The notes beneath the pieces are model-generated. The model had not been told where the DNA came from. It did not search any database and worked only from the letters and a program-made list of their open reading frames with translations. From assembly GCA_004431415.1 (NCBI GenBank), contig QPMI01000560.1, positions 310,001-374,000 of the forward strand: a DNA stretch of 64,000 nucleotides. The letters are read 5' to 3'. Within the stretch, counting starts at the first letter, position 1; each line of letters starts with the position of its first letter. This DNA comes from Cyanophora paradoxa CCMP329. Taxonomy: Eukaryota > Plantae > Glaucophyta. A program made the translations under genes and the position numbers. Shown here piece after piece: positions 1-9,358 of this stretch.

Positions 1-3000
1 CGCCCCGCTTCCCGTAGTACATCGCGCAGGGGCGGCACACCTCCAGCCGCCCCGCCACCACCCGCCCCGCGCCCCCGCCCGCCTGCACCTCGATCGCCAG
101 CAGCCGCCCCGCCGGCCACGGCCGCCCGCACGCCGCGTTCTGGCACTTGCAGAGCCCCGCCTGCTCGCTGCACGGGCGCCGTCAGCGACCGTTGAGGGCG
201 CCGGCGCGCCGGGCTCGCGGGGGGTACCCGTCCTCGGACTCGTCGTCGGGCTCGTGGGTGGGGGCCCACGCCTCGTCGGGGTACGCGGCGCGCAGCTCGG
301 CGAAGAGGCGCCGGTGCCGCGCCCGCTCCTCCCCCGCCTCGGGGGCGCGGGGCCGGCGGCCTCCGCCTCCGCCTCGGCCGCCGCCTCGCCGGCCTCCAGC
401 GCGGCGGCGACGGCGACGCACTGCCGCACGTTCCGGTAGAAGAGCTCCGGCTGCGAGGGGGGGTACGGGATCAGGAGGGGGAGGGGAGGGGAGGGGGTAC
501 AGGTCGGGGCACCTGGATGATCTCGCGGAGCTCGGCGTAGTGGCCGCTGTTGTACTTCTTGAGGCGCCCGAAGGCCTCCGACACCACCCCGGCCAGCCGC
601 CCCTGCGCGGCCCGCCTCGCGCGGGGGCCGGGGCGGGGCGGGGCGGCGGGCGGGGGCGGGGCGGGCGGGCCTGGAACCACTTGGCCTCCTCCTGGGCCAT
701 GTGGCGGAGCATCCCGCGCACTCGTCCCCGAGCTCGGCGGCCGCGGGGGCGAGGGCGCGCCCCAGGGCCTCGAGGCGGGCCTCGCCGCGGGGCTGGGCGA
801 GGGCCTCGGCGGCGGCGCGGGCGAGGCGCGGGGCGAGCTCGGCGGCGAAGAGGTCGCGCAGCTCGGCGACGGCGGGGCCGAGGCGGGCGGCCGCCTCCCG
901 CACGGCGCGCTCCATGTCGCCCTTGAGGCGCCGGTGCTCGAAGGAGAGGAGGATGGGGCCCAGGCGCACCTCCAGCCCCGCCCCCCCCAGCGTCTCCCGC
1001 TCCCGGCCCCCGCCCGGGCCCCCCTCCTCCTCCCGCGCGAAGTGGAAGCACAGCTGCCGCGCCGCTGAGGGGGGAAGGGGAAGAGGGGGGGGGTACGGGG
1101 CGCTACCTCGCGGTAGCGGTCGCGCCAGGTGCGGCGGTAGATGTGGCGGAGCTCGGCGGCGACACCCGCGGCGGCCTCCTCGGGGAAGAAGGCCATCAGC
1201 GGCCCGAAGAGCGCCTCGGCGACCCGCGGCTCGGGCTCGCCGCCCCGCCGCGTGCACGCCAGCAGCGCCGACCCCAGCTCCCGCTCGCTCGCCAGCAGCT
1301 CGCGGTGCCGGCCCCGCAGCGCCTCCAGCATGTGCTGGGGCGTGCACGCCGCCGCCCGCTCCTGGATGTGCGCCGTGGCCTCGGCGACGCGGGCGCGCAG
1401 GGCGGGGTCCTTGTCGGCGTCGTCCAGGGTGAGGGCCTTCTGGATGGCCTTGGCCTTGGCGCCGCGGCGGCGGAGGGCGCGCTCGGCCTCGGCGAGGGCG
1501 CGGCGGGCCTCCTCGCTGCCCCGCTCCCCGCTCTGGAGGATCTCCCCCGCCTTGAACATCTGGTGGGAGAGGATGGCGAAGGGCGCCAGGCACTCCGACG
1601 CGAGGCGGGCGGCGAGCTCGGCGCGGCGCTCGCGGAGGCGGGCGGCGTGGCGGGCGGCGACGTCCCCCGCGAGGGCCCCGAGGCCGTAGAGCTCGTCGGA
1701 GCGGAGGCCGGAGAGGACGCAGGCCGTGCGGAAGCGCAGCAGGCCCGCCTCGTCCGTCGCCCGCTGCCGCCCCAGCCGCCCCCGCTCCGCCGCCCGCCAC
1801 GCCTCCATGTCCCCCGCCTCCTCCCCGCCGCCCTCCCCCTCCTCGTCCATCCTCTCCAGCGCCGGCACCAGCTGTGCCCCGCCGCCCGCTCAGAAGAGAG
1901 GGGAGAAGAGAGGAGAGAAAGTGCGGGGAGGGGCGGGCGGACGCGGCGCTCGAGGGCGGCGAGCTGGGCGTTGTTGAGGCGCTCGTCGGGCTTGAGGTTG
2001 GCGCGCAGGGCCTCCCCCACGGAGAGCGCGAAAGCCTTGAAGCTCTCGCAGCGCACCCGCCGGTGCTCCCCCGCCACCTGCGCCGCCGTCGCCACGTCCC
2101 CCTCGTCCCCCGCCTCCAGCTTCAGGTGGTAGTCCACGTTCAGCCTGCGAGGGCGCGGCGGGTAGTCAGAGAGAGGCGAGAGGCGCGGGAGGGGCGCGGG
2201 GCGCGCAGGAAGGTGGTCGGCACGCCCGGCGGGGTCTTGAAGCGGTTCAGCAGGCCGCCGGGCCCCGGCTGCAGCAGCGTCTGCGGGGCGCGGTGAGGCG
2301 GTGCGGGGGGGCGACGTGAGGGGGCGGGTGCGGGCCGTCCAGAAGTCCTGGGCGATGGGGCGGAGGTCGGTGAGGAGGAAGAGGTGGTCGATGGGCTCGG
2401 CGAGGACGCGGCGGATGACGGCCGAGCGGTAGCGGTCCTGCACCCCGAAGCCCGGGACGTCGACGAGGACGACGCCCGGCTGGAGCAGCGGGCACGGCAG
2501 GTACACCTCCACCTCCTGCAGCACCGCCCACTGCACGAACGACGCCCCCGCCCCGCCCGCCCCGCCCTGCCTCCCGCCGGCCCCGGCGCCGGGGCCGCTG
2601 GGCGACCCCGCCGTGGTGGCGAGGAGGAAGTGGTGGAGGGCGGCGAGGGCGGCGTGCGGGGCCCCCGGGAAGACAACGGTGCGGGCCGACCCGAGGAAGG
2701 CGGCCTGGTCGGCGGGCAGGCGCAGGCGCTCGGGCGGGAGGCGGCGGCGGAGCTCGGCGGTGGTGGCGAGGGGCACGCCGCAGAGGTGGCACGCCTCGTC
2801 GATGACCTCTGCGTCCACCTCGGCCTCGTCGCTCGCCCGGCACGCCTCCAGCTGCCGCCGCGCCTCCACCAGCACCGCCTGCACCCGCCCCGCCGCCTTG
2901 TACCGCAGCACGACCGCCACCTGCTTCCCGTGCCGCAGCCGCGTGACCACGGAGGTCGTCACGCGGGGCGAGGTGGGCAGCAGGCCCGTGCGCTCCCGCC

Positions 3001-5523
3001 GGTACGCCGTGCGCGCCAGGGCCGCCCCGGCCTCGACCTCGGCGAGCACGCGCTCGCGGCCCGCAGCGGCCCGGGCTCCCCCTCCACCAGGCCCGCCCCC
3101 CGCAGCCGCGCCGCCGCCGCCGCCGGCTCCTCCGCCGCCGCCGGCCCCGCGCTGGCGCCCTCGCTGCTGCCGCCCTCCGGCCCCTCCTCGCGCGCCTCCT
3201 CCACCAGCGCCCGCGAGGACTGCAGCGCTCTCAGCTGCCGCGTCCGCCGCGTCTGGCGGGAACGGACCGTGTGGAGGGCGGAGCGGACGGCGGCGAGCTC
3301 GGCGGGGGTCGCCTCGGGGAGGCCCTCCGGGAACATCGAGTGCGTCACCAGCGCACTCACCGTCGTGCTCTTCCTGCGCACGCACGCGCCCCCCACGGCT
3401 CAAGAGCGGAGGAGGGAGCGAGCGGGGGCGCGGGCGGGGCGGACCCGATGCCGTTGTGGCCGCAGACGAAGACGGCGGAGACGACGGGCTGCTCGGCGGC
3501 CGCGCGGATCTCCTCCGCGGCGCGCTGCACGCGCCCGAGCTCCCGCTGCGCCTCGAAGAGGATCGAGTCGGCCTCGACGTCCCCGGCCCCGCGCCCGCCG
3601 GCCGAGGTCGGCGCCATCGGCTCCTGCGAGGCCGCCTGCGACGCCAGGAACAGCGACGACTCGTCTGCCGCCGCCGCCGCCCCCGCGTCAGCCGCCGCCG
3701 GGGCTCTGGTGGAGGGCGGGGGCACCGGGAGCGGCGGGGGCGGGGGCGTGCGGGGAGTGGAGGCCGGAGGGGGTGAGGAAGTTGTCGGAGCGGAGGTAGA
3801 CGTCCAGCGCCTGCTCGAAGTCCGCCAGGCACTGCCCCAGCGCCCCCAGCGGGTGCCCGCCAGGCCCCGACGACCCCGCCCGCGCCGGCGCCCCCGCCGG
3901 CGCCACCGGCGCGGCCTCCTCGGCGGCCGTCAGCTGCAGGGGGGCCTCCTCGCCGGAGGCGGCCGCGCCGGGCCCGGACCCCGAGGGGGCGGCGGCGGGG
4001 GTGGCGACGGGGACGGCGGCCGGGGGCGGCGGGGGCGGCATGCTGCGGCCCTCGGGCGGGGCGCCGGGGTCGGCGAAGGTGGCGACGGGGTAGCCCTTGA
4101 CGCCGCGGCGCGTGTAGACGACCTGGAAGCCGTCCGGGATCGATTCCACCGTCAGGTGCGCCGGCTTGCCCCCGCACGCCTCGTCCGCGAACCCCACCCG
4201 GTACCCGTCCCGCAGCTCTGCGCCCGGCGCGTGGGCCGGCGCGCGGCGGGGCGAGGGCGGGGGCGCAGGCACCGACGCGCTGCCCGAGGACGCGGCGGAC
4301 CTGCGGGAGTTCGCGGAAGGCCGCGAGGGCCTCCTGCGAGGTCCCGAAGGGGCGGCTCCGCTTCCGCCGCACGAGCTTCAGCAAGAAGGCCCGCAGCGAG
4401 GGCGAGATGGAGGGCGCCCCGTCGTCCCCGGGGGGCGGCTCCCATTCGTTTTGGAAGAAGTGAGGGCAGGGGGCGGCGGGGCCCCGCCCGAGGAGCTCCA
4501 TGCAGGTGACACCCAGGCCCCACAGGTCGAGCTGCTGGGGCCGCTCGAGCGCCACCCGCCCGTCGGCCCGCGCGTTGACGAGCAGCGGGTCCATGTACGC
4601 CTCGCAGCAGATGCGCGTGAACGAGGCGGCCGTGGCGAGCTCCCCGGGCTCCTCCCCGCCCTCCGCCACGTCCTTGGCCACACCGAAGTCCACCAGGCGG
4701 AAGGCCCCGCCCCCGCCCCCCTCGAGCATCACGTTGGCGGGGGTGATGTCCCGGTGCAGGAGGCCCCGCCCGTGCACGTGCACGAGCGCCTCGAGGCCGT
4801 CCTGCAGCAGCCGCCGCGCCTCCGCCTCGCCGAAGCGGGCGGAGGCCCCGGGCTGCTGCAGCGCCCGCTTCAGGGAGAGGCCCTCCACGAGCTCCATCAC
4901 GTAGAAGGGCGCCCCCGCCGCCTCGCCCTCCCCGTACACCCGCGGCACCGCCCGGTGCTGGATGCGCGCGAGCAGCCGCGACTCGCGCCGGAAGTAGTGC
5001 AGGCCCGTCTCCCGCTCCTCCTCCGAGTGGCCCCGCGCCATCCGAAAGACCTGCGGTGACGGCGGTGGCGGCCGAGCTCAGCGAGGCCGAGCGAAGCTAA
5101 GCGGGGGCGGGGGCGGGGGCGCGGGCGGGCCTTGACGGCAAACCGGCGGCTCTCCTCCTCCTCGGGCCAGGAGGAGAGCCGCCCCACCGCGATGTACACC
5201 TCCCTGCCCGCCCCGCCCGTCGGCGTGGCGGCGCGGCCGGCGGGCTGCGCGGCGCTGCGGGGGCGCACCCGAAGGCCCCGGCGTCCAGCTCGTTCGTGAG
5301 GTAGCCGATCCACGTTTCGTTGCCCTCGCCCGCCGCCCACAGGCGCAGCTCCGTCCCACCGCAGTCCCTCTGCAACCGTGGCGCGTCGCGGTTAGACGGA
5401 GGAGCCAGGATCGCAGCGCGTCAGGCAGACCTGCTTGCATTTGCCGTCCCTGTGAGGCCCATCGCTCATACGCGAGCACTTCGCGCAGAAGAGCTTCACG
5501 TCATCCGGCAGCGCGATGACCAT
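1..5523 (-). CDS. Multidomain protein: Zn ribbon + bacterial-type Ser/Thr kinase + dynamin-like GTPase + helical region + GATA-like Zn finger (3' end outside window)
   Basis: Spliced reconstruction from ATG 5523: MVIALPDDVKLFCAKC..GKCKQ|RDC; kinase GAFG, FAVK, HRDITPAN, DFGVAK; GTPase GHNGIG|KST, LLPTSPRVTTSVVTRL, LVDVPG; terminal CQNAAC..VCRPCAMYYGKRG. Exons from kinase to GTPase join in frame. Confidence 0.8.
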
Positions 5524-5935
5524 GGCTGCGATAGACGTCCTGCGATAGCGGCGCGCCACGCCCGACGGCGCGGAGTGCCACTAGAGAGCGCCTTCGCACA
5601 TACCTCCGCGTCGCGCAGCTGCGCTAGGCACGCGTCGAACTAGAGCTGCAAAGGCGTCGCCGGTCTTCACCGAAAGTGAGCTGAGGCGGGGCGGGCTGGC
5701 CCGTCGAGCACGTTCTCCGACTTCTCAAGAAGCGCAGCCGTCGGACCGCACGACCGCTAGACCAGCTGGATTCGAAACCGCCCGAAGCGGACGGGTACGG
5801 CACGACATCGCGCTCGCCGAAGAGCCCCTTCACTGCAACCAGCCGGACATTTTCCGGGAACCTTGATCACAACCTGCTGGCCGCCTGTAGCGGCGGCGCA
5901 GCTCGCTAGCTAGCTCTCGAGAACCGAGGCAAGCT

Positions 5936-7632
5936 ATGGCGGCCCCGTCCAGCGAGATCCAGAGGGCGATCGCGCAGGCGAAGCTCGTGCGCGCATGCCG
6001 CCGGCGGACGACTTGCGAACGCCGACTGACCTCCGTTGCCGCCAGGCCGTCGAGCTGGACCAGAAGGGCGACTTTGTGAATGCGATTACGAAGTACAAAT
6101 ACGCTTTGCAGCTAATAGAAGCAGGTGTGCACGTCCGGTCGATGCAGTCGCTCACTCGCGCTCCTGACCCCGATTGCCCGCGCGCAGAGATACCAAAGCA
6201 GGTGCGGAAGCGATCGCTTATCCAGGGTCTCCGCTCCGTAGCGCCCAGGTCGCCTAACGCCGGCGCGCCTCTCCGCAGACCGACCCGGCACGGATCCAGC
6301 AGCTCACAAGCTATGTGCGCTGCCGACGCGCCGCTCCCCGACGCCTGTCCCCGCTTCGGCCCCCGACCGCAGCCGCACGCGAGCAGATACAGGCGTACAA
6401 ATCACGGGTGAAGTTCCTCGAGGAGCAAAAGGAGAAGGATGCCGAGCAGCGGCTTTCTCAGGAGCTCGAGCGGCAACAGCTGAACGCGGAGCCGGCCGTG
6501 AGGTGCGGACCTCTGGCGCCTGCGCTCAGCGAGCCCTGCGCTCCCGCTGACCTCGCCCCCCGCGCAGGTCCCCGCCAGCGGCGGCGGCGGCAGCGGCGGC
6601 GGCGGCAGTGGCGGCGGCGGCGCCCTCGGCGGGCTTTAGGCCGCCCGTCTTCATGCTGCACTTCGAGGAGGCCCGCATCGTCGGCAAGGCGCGCCCGCAC
6701 CCGCGCCCGCCCCCGCCCCCGCCCTCGGCCGCGCCGCTGAGGGGGGCGCCGCAGCCGCCGACGGACAAGGGCCCGTCGTCGCCGCTGCACCGTCCCTTCT
6801 GGCTCATGGCGCGGCTGCAAGAGTCGATGGAGACCGGGGGCTACCTCACGGAGAAGCTCTACGTGCCGCGGGACCTCTGGCTCCAACGCGGGGCGAAGAT
6901 CCAGGCGATCCAGGCCAAGATGGGCTTCTGCCAGGAGCTCAAGGCCGAGATCCTGCACCTGGAGAAGGCGGCGGAGAGCAGAGAGCGCTTCCCCGAGGTG
7001 CTCGAGGAGTTCAAGCAGCGCGTCCTCCAGATGCGCAACGCCCTCTCCAAGGCCCTCCCCTACATCCAGGCCTCGGCCGCCGAGGAGAAGGAGAAGGGGG
7101 TCATGTCCCGCATCGGCGCCGCCATCGCGAAGAAGGCGGTGCACGCGAAGAACGTCATCCTCGCCTCCCGCATTGAGGACGACTCCGCCTACATCCACGC
7201 CCTCGTCGACACCTTCAAGCAGACCTCCTGCATCGGTCCCCGCGCCCGCCGGCGGCCCCCCTCGCCCCCCGCCGACGCACGGGGCCGCGGCGCAGAGGCG
7301 TGGATCTGGAAGTACGAGGAGCTGGCGAAGACGGACGCGGGGGCGCGCAAGGTCCTCGACCGCCTCGAGGTCGTCGCCGAGTTCTACTACCAGGTCCCAG
7401 CGCCCCGAGCAGCCCCCGCCCCGCGCCCGCGCCCCCCCTGCTCTGAGCGCCGAGCGCGCCGGCAGGTGGTGTGCAAGTTCGTGATGCGCGACCTCTCCAT
7501 GCTCATCGAGCGTGCGCCCCGCCCCGCCGCGCCCTGTTCGCCTCGCTTCGCTTCGCCTTCCTTGGCGCTGACGGCGCTCCAGGGTACATCCGGCGCTCCA
7601 GGGAGAGCCTCGTCTTCGCCCTGCCCCCGTAG
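5936..7632 (+). CDS. MIT-domain protein with conserved C-terminal helical domain
   Basis: IQRAIAQAKL|AVELDQKGDFVNAITKYKYALQLI and AYKSRVKFL (MIT helices); RPFWLMARL..GGYLTEKLYVPRDLWLQ; VVCKFVMRDLSMLIER|Y; stop TAG 7630-7632. Confidence 0.8.
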
Positions 7633-7821: not shown

Positions 7822-9358
7822 TCAGACGGTGTAGCGGACGGCCTCGACGAAGACGCCGCGGGCGCGCAGGGCCGCCTTGGCCCCCTCCGAGGCCGCCGTC
7901 CCGCCCAGGTCCAGCGCGCGCAGGGCGGGGAGGGCGGCGGGGAGGGCGGCGAGGGCGGGGTCGGAGAGGAGGGGGCAGGCGCGCAGATCGAGGGCACGCA
8001 GGCGCGGGCAGCCGGCGGCCACGGCGGCCAGCGCGGCGTCGTCCAGCGAGGCCAGGCCGCCCAGCTCGAGGCTCTCGAGGCAGGGCCAGGCCGTGGCCGC
8101 CGCGGCCACGGCGGCTCCCGTCGCCCCCGGGCAGCGGAAGAGGGAGAGGGATCGCAGGGCGGGGCAGGCGGCGAGGGCGGCGATGGCGGCGGGGGAGAGG
8201 GGCACCCCGGAGAGGTCGAGGGCCGTGAGGGACGGGGCGAGGCGGGCGGCGAGGCGCTCGGCCCCCGCCGCGGTGAGGCCCTCGCACTGGCGCAGCGAGA
8301 GCGAGCGCAGCGCGCGGCACGCCTTCGCCACGGCCAGCGCCCCCTCGTCCGTGACCCGCGCCCTGCGCGGGGCTCAGGCGGGCGGGCGGGGCCGCGGGCG
8401 GCAGGCCGGGGCGGCGGGGCGCGCCTCCGGAGGGAGAGCTCCTCGAGGAGGCGGCAGTGGGCGGCGATGGCGAAGGCGGAGGCGTCCGAGAGGCCGGCGG
8501 CGCCCCCGAGGTCCAGCGCCCGCAGCGTCCCCCGCACGCCCCCGCCAGCGCCCCACCGCCGCGTCCGTCAGCGGCGACGCCGCCTGCTCCGCGTTGAGCC
8601 GCTCCAGCGGCGGCGGCGGGGCGCCGGCGGCGAGGGCCAGGATCGCGGCGTCCCGACGTTGCGGCAGCCGCGCACGTTCAGCTCCCGCAGCGCGCGGCAC
8701 GCCCGCGCCACCGCGCCCACGCTCGCGTCCCCCGCCGCCTCCATGTTCTCCACCCGCAGCGCCCGCACGTTCGGGCAGCTCTCCGCGAGCGCCGCCAGCG
8801 CCTCGGCCCACGCGCGCCGCCCCGAGGGCGGCAGCGCGAGGAGCTGCAGCTGGGGCCCGGCGAGGCGGATGGCGGCGACGGCGCTCTCGACGCTCAGCCG
8901 GTGGCACGCGACGAAGTCGAGCTGCGCGTACAGGTGCGCCGCCGGCTCCCCCGTGAGCAGAATCCTCCAGCGCCTGGGGCGGAGGCGTGAGGCTGAGGAA
9001 ACGTAGGGGACGGGGCGACGGCGGCGAACCTGCAGACGCGGCGCATCCGGAAGAGATCCGGCACCGGCGCCGCCTGGAAGAAGGCGAAGACGTGCATCAG
9101 GATCTCATCGGGCAGGCCAGCGACCTCGTCCTCGGCGTCGTCGCTGGGGGCTGGAGCCGGGCCCGCAACCGGCACCTCGGCCTGCGCGTCGGCCGCCACG
9201 GCAAACGGGTCGCCATCCGCATCCGCATCCTGCAGGTCGAAGCGGCTGAATGCGTCGAAGGCGCCTGTGCAGGGCCGCGCCACGCGCGGCTTCCGCCAGA
9301 ACCGCCCGATGCAAGCGCCCGTCGCCGCCTCCTCGCAGCTCCACGCCCGTTTGCTCAT
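7822..9358 (-). CDS. F-box/LRR protein (FBXL-like)
   Basis: F-box LPDEILMHVFAF..LFRMRRVCR|RW followed by cysteine-containing LRRs (CPRLRALDLRACPLLSDPAL, LRSLSLRQCEGLT). Confidence 0.88.

Follow-up and report, generated by a model that had tools for sequence, protein, structure and literature searches.

Membrane fission, fusion and repair are the canonical roles of the dynamin superfamily, which also includes the Mx proteins, antiviral in animals. GTPase and kinase are found in one chain in the ROCO proteins, where a Roc (Ras-like) G domain is followed by COR, and some bacterial-type kinases are anti-phage genes. Among bacterial dynamins, DynA acts in phage defense (PMC8844932), and a Leo-like two-gene dynamin system acts in bacterial defense (bioRxiv 10.1101/2022.05.11.491447). 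Here, we describe a gene of the glaucophyte alga Cyanophora paradoxa CCMP329, located at one end of a stretch of 64,000 nucleotides (contig QPMI01000560.1, positions 310,001 to 374,000; referred to as the window), which joins a Ser/Thr kinase and a divergent dynamin-family GTPase in one protein. The gene has a single reading frame, is transcribed and spliced, and encodes two enzymatic domains together with a stalk and a finger that are conserved in one paralog.

The encoded protein shares with the bacterial dynamin-like proteins (Nostoc BDLP, B. subtilis DynA, and LeoA/BC of the Eleos defense system) the G1 to G3 motifs of Dynamin_N, followed by a long predicted helical region. However, it has neither a sequence match to the solved members nor a paddle, and its gene is eukaryotic and intron-rich, with a kinase and two zinc modules attached. 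The BDLP/mitofusin membrane type is marked by a membrane paddle or transmembrane segment, whereas no hydrophobic segment is present here (the best 19-residue Kyte-Doolittle window scores 1.36, below the usual 1.6). The bacterial Hanks kinases PknB and PD-T4-6 are the best PDB and PADLOC matches of the kinase, which keeps their catalytic residues. Unlike them, the Cyanophora protein has no PASTA, TPR, or WD40 partners, carries an N-terminal zinc ribbon, and has Thr in place of the catalytic-loop Lys. The likeness to the ROCO proteins (LRRK2 and relatives) is one of concept: a G domain and a kinase share a chain, and nucleotide state or dimerization could gate the kinase. In contrast to these, the GTPase is of the dynamin family and not Roc/Ras-like, the two domains come in reverse order (the kinase is N-terminal), and homology is limited to the kinase fold. 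Neither Roc nor COR has a Pfam match, at E values up to 0.1, in P0001, the public EukProt gene model of this gene (1633 amino acids), which was used for full-length searches.

One reading frame for kinase, GTPase, and zinc modules

The gene occupies the minus strand from window position 5785 to 1 as a single 15-exon unit, and its 3' part lies beyond the window start. The start codon is at 5523-5521, and RNA contigs extend the 5' untranslated region (UTR) to about 5785. Translation of the exons singly, with the phase carried over and N placed at three bases missing from the assembly (see below), gives 1551 codons and 0 stops. The first 5.8 kb of the window has a G+C content of 74-82%, and because of this GC-rich composition all six frames are open, so that the length of an open reading frame (ORF) is by itself uninformative. 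The GC content at third codon positions (GC3) is 0.84 in exon 1, 0.94 in exon 2, and 0.97-1.00 in all later exons, versus 0.40-0.64 at second positions (GC2) of the same exons, which provides strong independent support for the reading frame. Third-position GC marks the coding frame in the Cyanophora genome far better than ORF length does.

Exons were searched one at a time, and no self-joined spliced model served as a query. Given alone, exon sequences match Pkinase on 5050-4280 (E value, 5.3e-22; 78.9 bits; cut-off, 31.7) and Dynamin_N on 3058-2339 (31.0 bits; cut-off, 27), while the remaining exon pieces match no significant Pfam family. P0001 is an independent public model, and in it the kinase, GTPase, and zinc modules are already joined. 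The product is a soluble protein of about 1700 residues, organized as an N-terminal Cys4 zinc ribbon, a Hanks-type Ser/Thr kinase, a disordered linker, a divergent dynamin-superfamily G domain, a predicted helical stalk of roughly 500 residues, a C-terminal Cys4 finger joined to a basic helix, and a tail of low complexity.

Transcript evidence and assembly errors

Sequencing runs containing about 70% of sampled words were used, and their contigs were aligned to window positions 1-6000. Contigs of runs X1, X3, and X7, from two studies, are without introns and thus RNA-derived, whereas X8 retains the introns and is therefore DNA. Spliced contigs of the three RNA runs cover nearly the whole gene, and most junctions are directly seen. 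On the kinase side, the aligned pieces are 5785-5431, 174 nucleotides (nt) for exons 2 and 3, and 5052-4273, followed by 212 nt more. The record length requires these 174 nt, which the exon model supplies as 101 plus 73. On the GTPase side, 298 nt precede 3664-3444, 3372-3268, and 3219-2584; further pieces are 2566-2336, 2280-2205, and 2142 onward, with 1871-1107 recovered separately. At the 3' end, 998-675, 94 nt, and 450-228 are followed by 768 nt that carry the transcript beyond the window start.

All three RNA runs contain one extra base behind positions 3059 (C), 712 (C), and 340 (G), which are homopolymer runs in the assembly (CCC, CCC, and GGGGG, respectively). These sites are 1-base homopolymer under-calls of the long-read assembly; the published Cyanophora assembly is PacBio-based, GC-rich, and intron-rich (PMC6704402). 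The under-calls produce three frame changes, and P0001 bridges the three errors by invented introns, by which about 64 residues are lost from the deposited protein. In practical terms, three homopolymer errors thus distort the public gene model.

The gene contains 14 introns of 48-80 nt, of which 10 are GT-AG and 4 are GC-AG (5130-5051, 2335-2281, 2206-2145, and 670-603); two of the latter are seen directly as RNA joints. Three of the four GC-AG introns share the donor context exon|GCCCGC. For one gene, four out of 14 is a large proportion, which may reflect the very GC-rich genome.

A first-pass annotation, made by reading the DNA without database searches, had proposed one gene in which one frame joins the zinc ribbon, kinase, GTPase, and C-terminal Cys4 finger, and Pfam, the RNA contigs, P0001, and GC3 all agree with this. 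As a correction to its introns, four of the 14 are GC-AG rather than GT-AG, and the frame changes near 3059, 712, and 340 that it had read as introns are 1-base assembly deletions. Its placement of the complete gene within 1-5523 does not hold, as the finger exon (167-1) continues past the window start and about 146 further P0001 residues lie there.

The kinase-GTPase junction

The kinase and GTPase exons are separated by the interval 4272-3665 (608 nt), in which a 55-nt and a 61-nt GT-AG intron flank the 492-nt exon 5. If two adjacent genes had been wrongly merged, a kinase mRNA would end and a GTPase mRNA would start inside this interval. Such a merger would fit the finding that none of the listed RNA contigs bridges 4273-3664 and that every assembly breaks near 4039-4006. 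However, exon 5 remains open in the phase dictated by both neighboring exons, and GC3 is 0.98-1.00 in all four of its quarters, versus a total GC of 0.67 in the 5' UTR. Moreover, the exon is entered from both sides, by 212 nt past 4273 in the kinase contig and by 298 nt past 3664 in the GTPase contig, which is enough to cover it. Judging from the record lengths, the end pieces being unlisted, the two contigs probably meet at about 4006-4023 and together span exon 5. The break itself falls at a proline-codon repeat, and X8 DNA contigs too end and restart close by, near 4047. De Bruijn graph assemblies tend to break at repeats of this kind. A merger of two genes is hence highly improbable, and we retain the single-gene reading.

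A kinase closest to bacterial Hanks-type kinases

In P0001, Pkinase (PF00069) covers residues 61-278 (1.8e-23; 83.7 bits versus a cut-off of 31.7). By sequence comparison, the domain is closest to bacterial Hanks-type Ser/Thr kinases. The best 19 matches of a PDB sequence search are bacterial, led by PknB (9e-18) and followed by StkP, PknI, and PknA (to 1e-11), with Aurora and CaMKII trailing the bacterial kinases at about 1e-11. Alignment with PknB indicates that the beta-3 Lys, alpha-C Glu, HRD Asp, catalytic-loop Asn, and DFG motif are kept. NCBIfam yields kinase-core matches only, far below the cut-offs (NF033483, PknB/Stk1, 77 bits versus an equivalog value of 450), and P0001 contains no Pfam match to PASTA. 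The best PADLOC profile is PD-T4-6 (2.4e-34; positions 13-273 of 292), a profile without a curated cut-off that any bacterial-type kinase may match; the hit may only mirror bacterial-type kinase sequence.

The 120 best kinase relatives of 898-2858 amino acids are fused to TPR, WD40, FGE-sulfatase, and similar domains, and all source-named ones among them are bacterial. None of these 120 nearest long relatives carries Dynamin_N. The closest relative, P0006, is encoded on a bacterial metagenome contig with no dynamin-like gene nearby, so that nothing points to a bacterial operon as the origin of the fusion.

An orphan dynamin-family GTPase

Dynamin_N (PF00350) scores 33.5 bits on P0001 and 31.0 bits when exon 8 is searched by itself, both above the cut-off of 27; positions 23-137 of the 168 in the profile are aligned. 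When 1.84 billion representative proteins were searched exhaustively by HMMER with exon 8, five matched: P0001, the Cyanophora paralog P0002 (2.6e-16), and, more distantly, three Dynamin_N proteins (7e-6 to 8e-4). A homologue search with the G-domain exon alone gave nothing, within a length window that left out the full-length protein, and a search by the G-domain region of P0001 retrieved P0001 itself only. A PDB sequence search with the G domain yielded only noise and no match to the solved BDLP, DynA, LeoA, or mitofusin. In language-model features of the Atlas, the nearest neighbors are bacterial Dynamin_N clusters, cyanobacterial ones included (0.94; about 180 shared features). These comparisons identify the G domain as an orphan, very divergent member of the dynamin family.

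The G1 (GxxxxGKS/T), G2 Thr-Ser, and G3 DxPG motifs are invariant in an alignment with four dynamin-family G domains. The P-loop is interrupted by an intron, and the junction is visible in RNA. Roughly 90 residues are inserted between G1 and G2, and G2 is separated from G3 by another long insert. The NUGGC/SLIP-GC-like and fungal Dynamin_N plus DUF7605 type was represented in our comparison by P0003, in which DUF7605 accompanies two Dynamin_N domains. P0003 likewise has a long G2-G3 insert and a Trp-containing strand leading into G3 (hhalign probability 85%, 99 columns). However, only about 100 residues align, the TKxD of its G4 is absent from the Cyanophora protein, and DUF7605 has no Pfam match in P0001.

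Stalk, paralog, and zinc modules

The sole paralog found is P0002 (EukProt EP00741_Cyanophora_paradoxa, tig00020938_g16149.t1), whose sequence identity is 41-43% in the stalk and 59% in the finger region. Its public model begins within the G domain and is without G1, G2, and G3/G4 apart from a fragment. The model may be truncated or mis-spliced, or the paralog may have lost the GTPase and kinase. In P0001, long helices are predicted from about residue 940 to 1415 by a low-confidence model. No homology between this stalk and P0003 was found by hhalign, and an Atlas feature search with the P0002 stalk and finger gave no usable match.

The cysteines of the N-terminal ribbon are spaced C-x2-C-x12-C-x4-C, and the ribbon has a counterpart in none of the 124 kinase-relative proteins fetched. 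The C-terminal finger has the spacing C-x4-C-x30-C-x2-C, with the cysteines conserved in P0002. Predicted alone, it forms hairpins and then a helix (predicted local distance difference test score [pLDDT], 68). This module had been called GATA-like in the first-pass annotation, and it does share with GATA fingers the four cysteines, a second C-x2-C knuckle that precedes aromatic residues and a basic helix, and two predicted hairpins before the helix. However, with C-x4-C as its first knuckle and a 30-residue spacer, the module departs from the C-x2-C-x17/18-C-x2-C of GATA. In addition, Pfam GATA (PF00320) gives no match to the finger even at an E value of 10, and a two-row finger profile reaches GATA-3 only at 4.4. 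Fold matches are at noise level: Foldseek with the finger model finds nothing below an E value of 0.77, and with VIA-align the best Z score is 3.7 (a ribosomal zinc protein, FYVE, and ZAD), compared to 2.5 for GATA-1. We therefore class the C-terminal module as a generic Cys4 finger of treble-clef-like type rather than as a GATA finger.

The two enzymatic assignments made in the first pass fare better. The bacterial-type Hanks kinase is borne out by PDB, NCBIfam, PADLOC, and the fetched relatives, all closest to bacterial kinases, and the Dynamin_N GTPase of bacterial type by a score above the cut-off and by feature neighbors in bacterial dynamin-family clusters. The architecture had also been described as unfamiliar, and it is rare. 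Each of the two enzyme families is familiar by itself, whereas the union of a dynamin-family GTPase and a Hanks kinase in a single chain with zinc modules is undescribed in the literature found: we found no paper describing the combination of kinase, dynamin-like GTPase, and zinc modules, in line with the absence of Dynamin_N from the long kinase relatives.

Alignment patterns of the stalk and finger found no relative in JGI metagenome contigs or IMG/VR viral contigs. Within the data searched, which did not directly cover other glaucophyte genomes, the family appears confined to Cyanophora. A giant-virus origin was set aside, given the 14 spliceosomal introns and an extreme GC3 as in the host.

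Possible function of the fusion protein

The best explanation for these observations is one expressed nuclear gene whose multidomain product acts as a nucleotide-gated signaling scaffold, to which we assign a probability of roughly 0.6. By analogy with the general behavior of dynamin-family proteins, GTP binding would lead to G-domain dimerization and stalk-mediated assembly. Assembly would bring the N-terminal kinases together, allowing trans-autophosphorylation or substrate phosphorylation, and the partner, be it nucleic acid or protein, would be chosen by the zinc modules at the two ends. The outcome would be a signaling scaffold that is ROCO-like in concept, rather than a membrane-cutting machine. 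If GTP-driven assembly indeed gates the kinase, the protein would represent a second, independent invention of the ROCO-type GTPase-plus-kinase principle, as well as an entry into the innate signaling of glaucophytes, a lineage with little-studied cell biology.

Several observations weigh against this interpretation. The G4 motif is degenerate (Asn-x-Asp without Lys), in a region where the alignment is unreliable, which leaves guanine specificity uncertain. In the PknB alignment, the catalytic-loop Lys is changed to Thr and the APE Glu to Leu, so that kinase activity is not assured. An AlphaFold2 model of P0001 residues 470-1510, built from a two-row alignment, has a pLDDT of 38, and the stalk is consequently known only as predicted helices. 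Lastly, kinase and GTPase are bridged by no single RNA contig, and the overlap in exon 5 is deduced only from lengths.

A role of the scaffold in stress or antiviral signaling would be its most attractive reading, because dynamin-family proteins and bacterial-type kinases both have antiviral or anti-phage members; it is a guess, and one more apt to be wrong than right. The suggestion made in the first pass, a module for defense or nuclear signaling, likewise goes beyond what the evidence supports. In a broader version, the gene and its paralog could form one family within a Cyanophora class of cell-autonomous immune or stress sensors, in which bacterial-type kinases and nucleic-acid- or partner-binding modules are placed on dynamin-like scaffolds and ligand-triggered GTPase assembly would switch the kinase on. 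We regard this class as unlikely; if true, the sensor would be a dynamin-based counterpart of Mx/GBP combined with the logic of bacterial anti-phage kinases.

The protein could instead remodel membranes, for instance in envelope or organelle dynamics, with the kinase merely regulatory. The canonical role of the superfamily points this way, as do the feature neighbors among bacterial dynamin-family proteins, cyanobacterial ones included. In addition, Cyanophora lacks drp5B, and an alternative mechanism has been proposed for division of its outer envelope (PMC6704402). However, the protein has no transmembrane or paddle-like hydrophobic segment, Pfam finds no PH, lipid-binding, or targeting domain, and no sequence similarity to solved dynamin-like proteins is detectable. 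A lineage-restricted, fast-evolving protein with one divergent paralog would also be unexpected for a core division factor, and a membrane role is therefore doubtful. The degenerate G4, the large low-complexity inserts between G1, G2, and G3, the two kinase substitutions, and a paralog model with only a fragment of G1 to G4 would be expected if both domains had decayed and lost their enzymatic activities, leaving a scaffold or pseudo-enzyme specific to the lineage. Such decay is quite unlikely, given that the key catalytic residues are all kept (P-loop, switch I Thr, DxxG, beta-3 Lys, alpha-C Glu, HRD Asp and Asn, and DFG) and that the gene is expressed and correctly spliced.

A nuclear regulator, in which a GATA-type finger and basic clusters resembling nuclear localization signals take the kinase and GTPase to chromatin, is more improbable still. 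The second knuckle and helix of the finger do recall GATA, with the GATA-3 and GATA-1 scores given above, and basic clusters are present at P0001 residues 313-324 and 1498-1505. However, the missing Pfam GATA match, a first knuckle and 30-residue spacer incompatible with GATA, and noise-level fold matches that favor GATA no more than FYVE, ZAD, or ribosomal zinc proteins all argue against it. The nucleotide-gated scaffold remains our preferred reading.

Exon and intron features

The coordinates of the exons are listed in Table 1. The linker encoded by exon 5 begins with a small segment rich in strands, continues through a low-complexity stretch rich in Pro and Ala, and ends in helices; it matches no Pfam family. 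The exon 6 junction is GT-AG once a 1-nt shift is applied, which is within the tolerance of the alignment tool. RNA pieces 3219-2584 and 2566-2336 cover exon 8. In exon 15, the cysteine codons are at 145-143, 130-128, 37-35, and 28-26, and the preceding intron (227-168) removes an in-frame stop at 184-182.

Table 1 Features of the Cyanophora kinase-GTPase gene in window coordinates
Feature	Position	Strand	Content and evidence
5' UTR	5524..5785	-	In-frame stop upstream of the start; X1, X3, and X7 contigs reach 5782-5785; GC, 0.67
Exon 1	5431..5523	-	Start codon; ribbon cysteines C13, C16, and C29 (P0001); RNA piece ends at 5431
Intron after exon 1	5430-5370	-	GT..AG
Exon 2	5269..5369	-	Ribbon cysteine C34; kinase glycine-rich loop; P0001 agrees
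Exon 3	5131..5203	-	Kinase beta-3 strand with catalytic lysine (aligned with the PknB beta-3 lysine); followed by GC-AG intron 5130-5051
Exon 4	4273..5050	-	Kinase core (alpha-C glutamate, HRD loop, DFG, activation segment, C-lobe); RNA unbroken over 5052-4273
Exon 5	3726..4217	-	Kinase-GTPase linker; 492 nt = 164 codons, open in frame
Exon 6	3445..3664	-	Pre-G-domain helix and first half of the P-loop (G1); RNA junctions at 3664 and 3444/3445
Exon 7	3268..3373	-	Second half of the P-loop (GKS/T); RNA joints 3372/3444 and 3219/3268 in three runs
Exon 8	2336..3219	-	Acidic/Ala-rich insert of roughly 90 residues, switch I (G2 threonine), long insert, G3 (DxxG); Dynamin_N, 31 bits
Exon 9	2207..2280	-	74 nt, GC-AG intron on either side; RNA joints 2280/2336 and 2142/2205, with 2-nt ambiguity
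Exon 10	1943..2144	-	G4-like position (Asn-x-Asp, no lysine); start of stalk
Exon 11	1107..1871	-	Helical stalk (low-confidence prediction); RNA 1871-1107; 39% identity to P0002 by tblastn
Exon 12	671..1053	-	Stalk; RNA 998-675 with extra C; corrected reading fits the paralog; followed by GC-AG intron 670-603
Exon 13	513..602	-	Stalk, highly conserved in the paralog; fits the 94-nt RNA gap between 675 and 450
Exon 14	228..450	-	End of stalk and acidic segment; RNA 450-228 with extra G
Exon 15	1..167	-	C-terminal Cys4 finger and start of basic helix; exits the window

Neighboring genes

A divergent neighbor on the plus strand (5995-6411, continuing to about 7834) starts about 200 nt from the 5' end of the gene. 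Its first ORF has a weak match to the MIT domain (21 bits, below the cut-off of 30). Between the two divergent genes, the G+C content falls to about 0.65, as expected of a shared promoter region. Further on, the minus-strand ORF at 7822-8331 encodes leucine-rich repeats of the F-box/LRR type (LRR_At5g56370, 8.8e-9, with LRR_6 and LRR_4 also matching) and is an ordinary neighbor gene.

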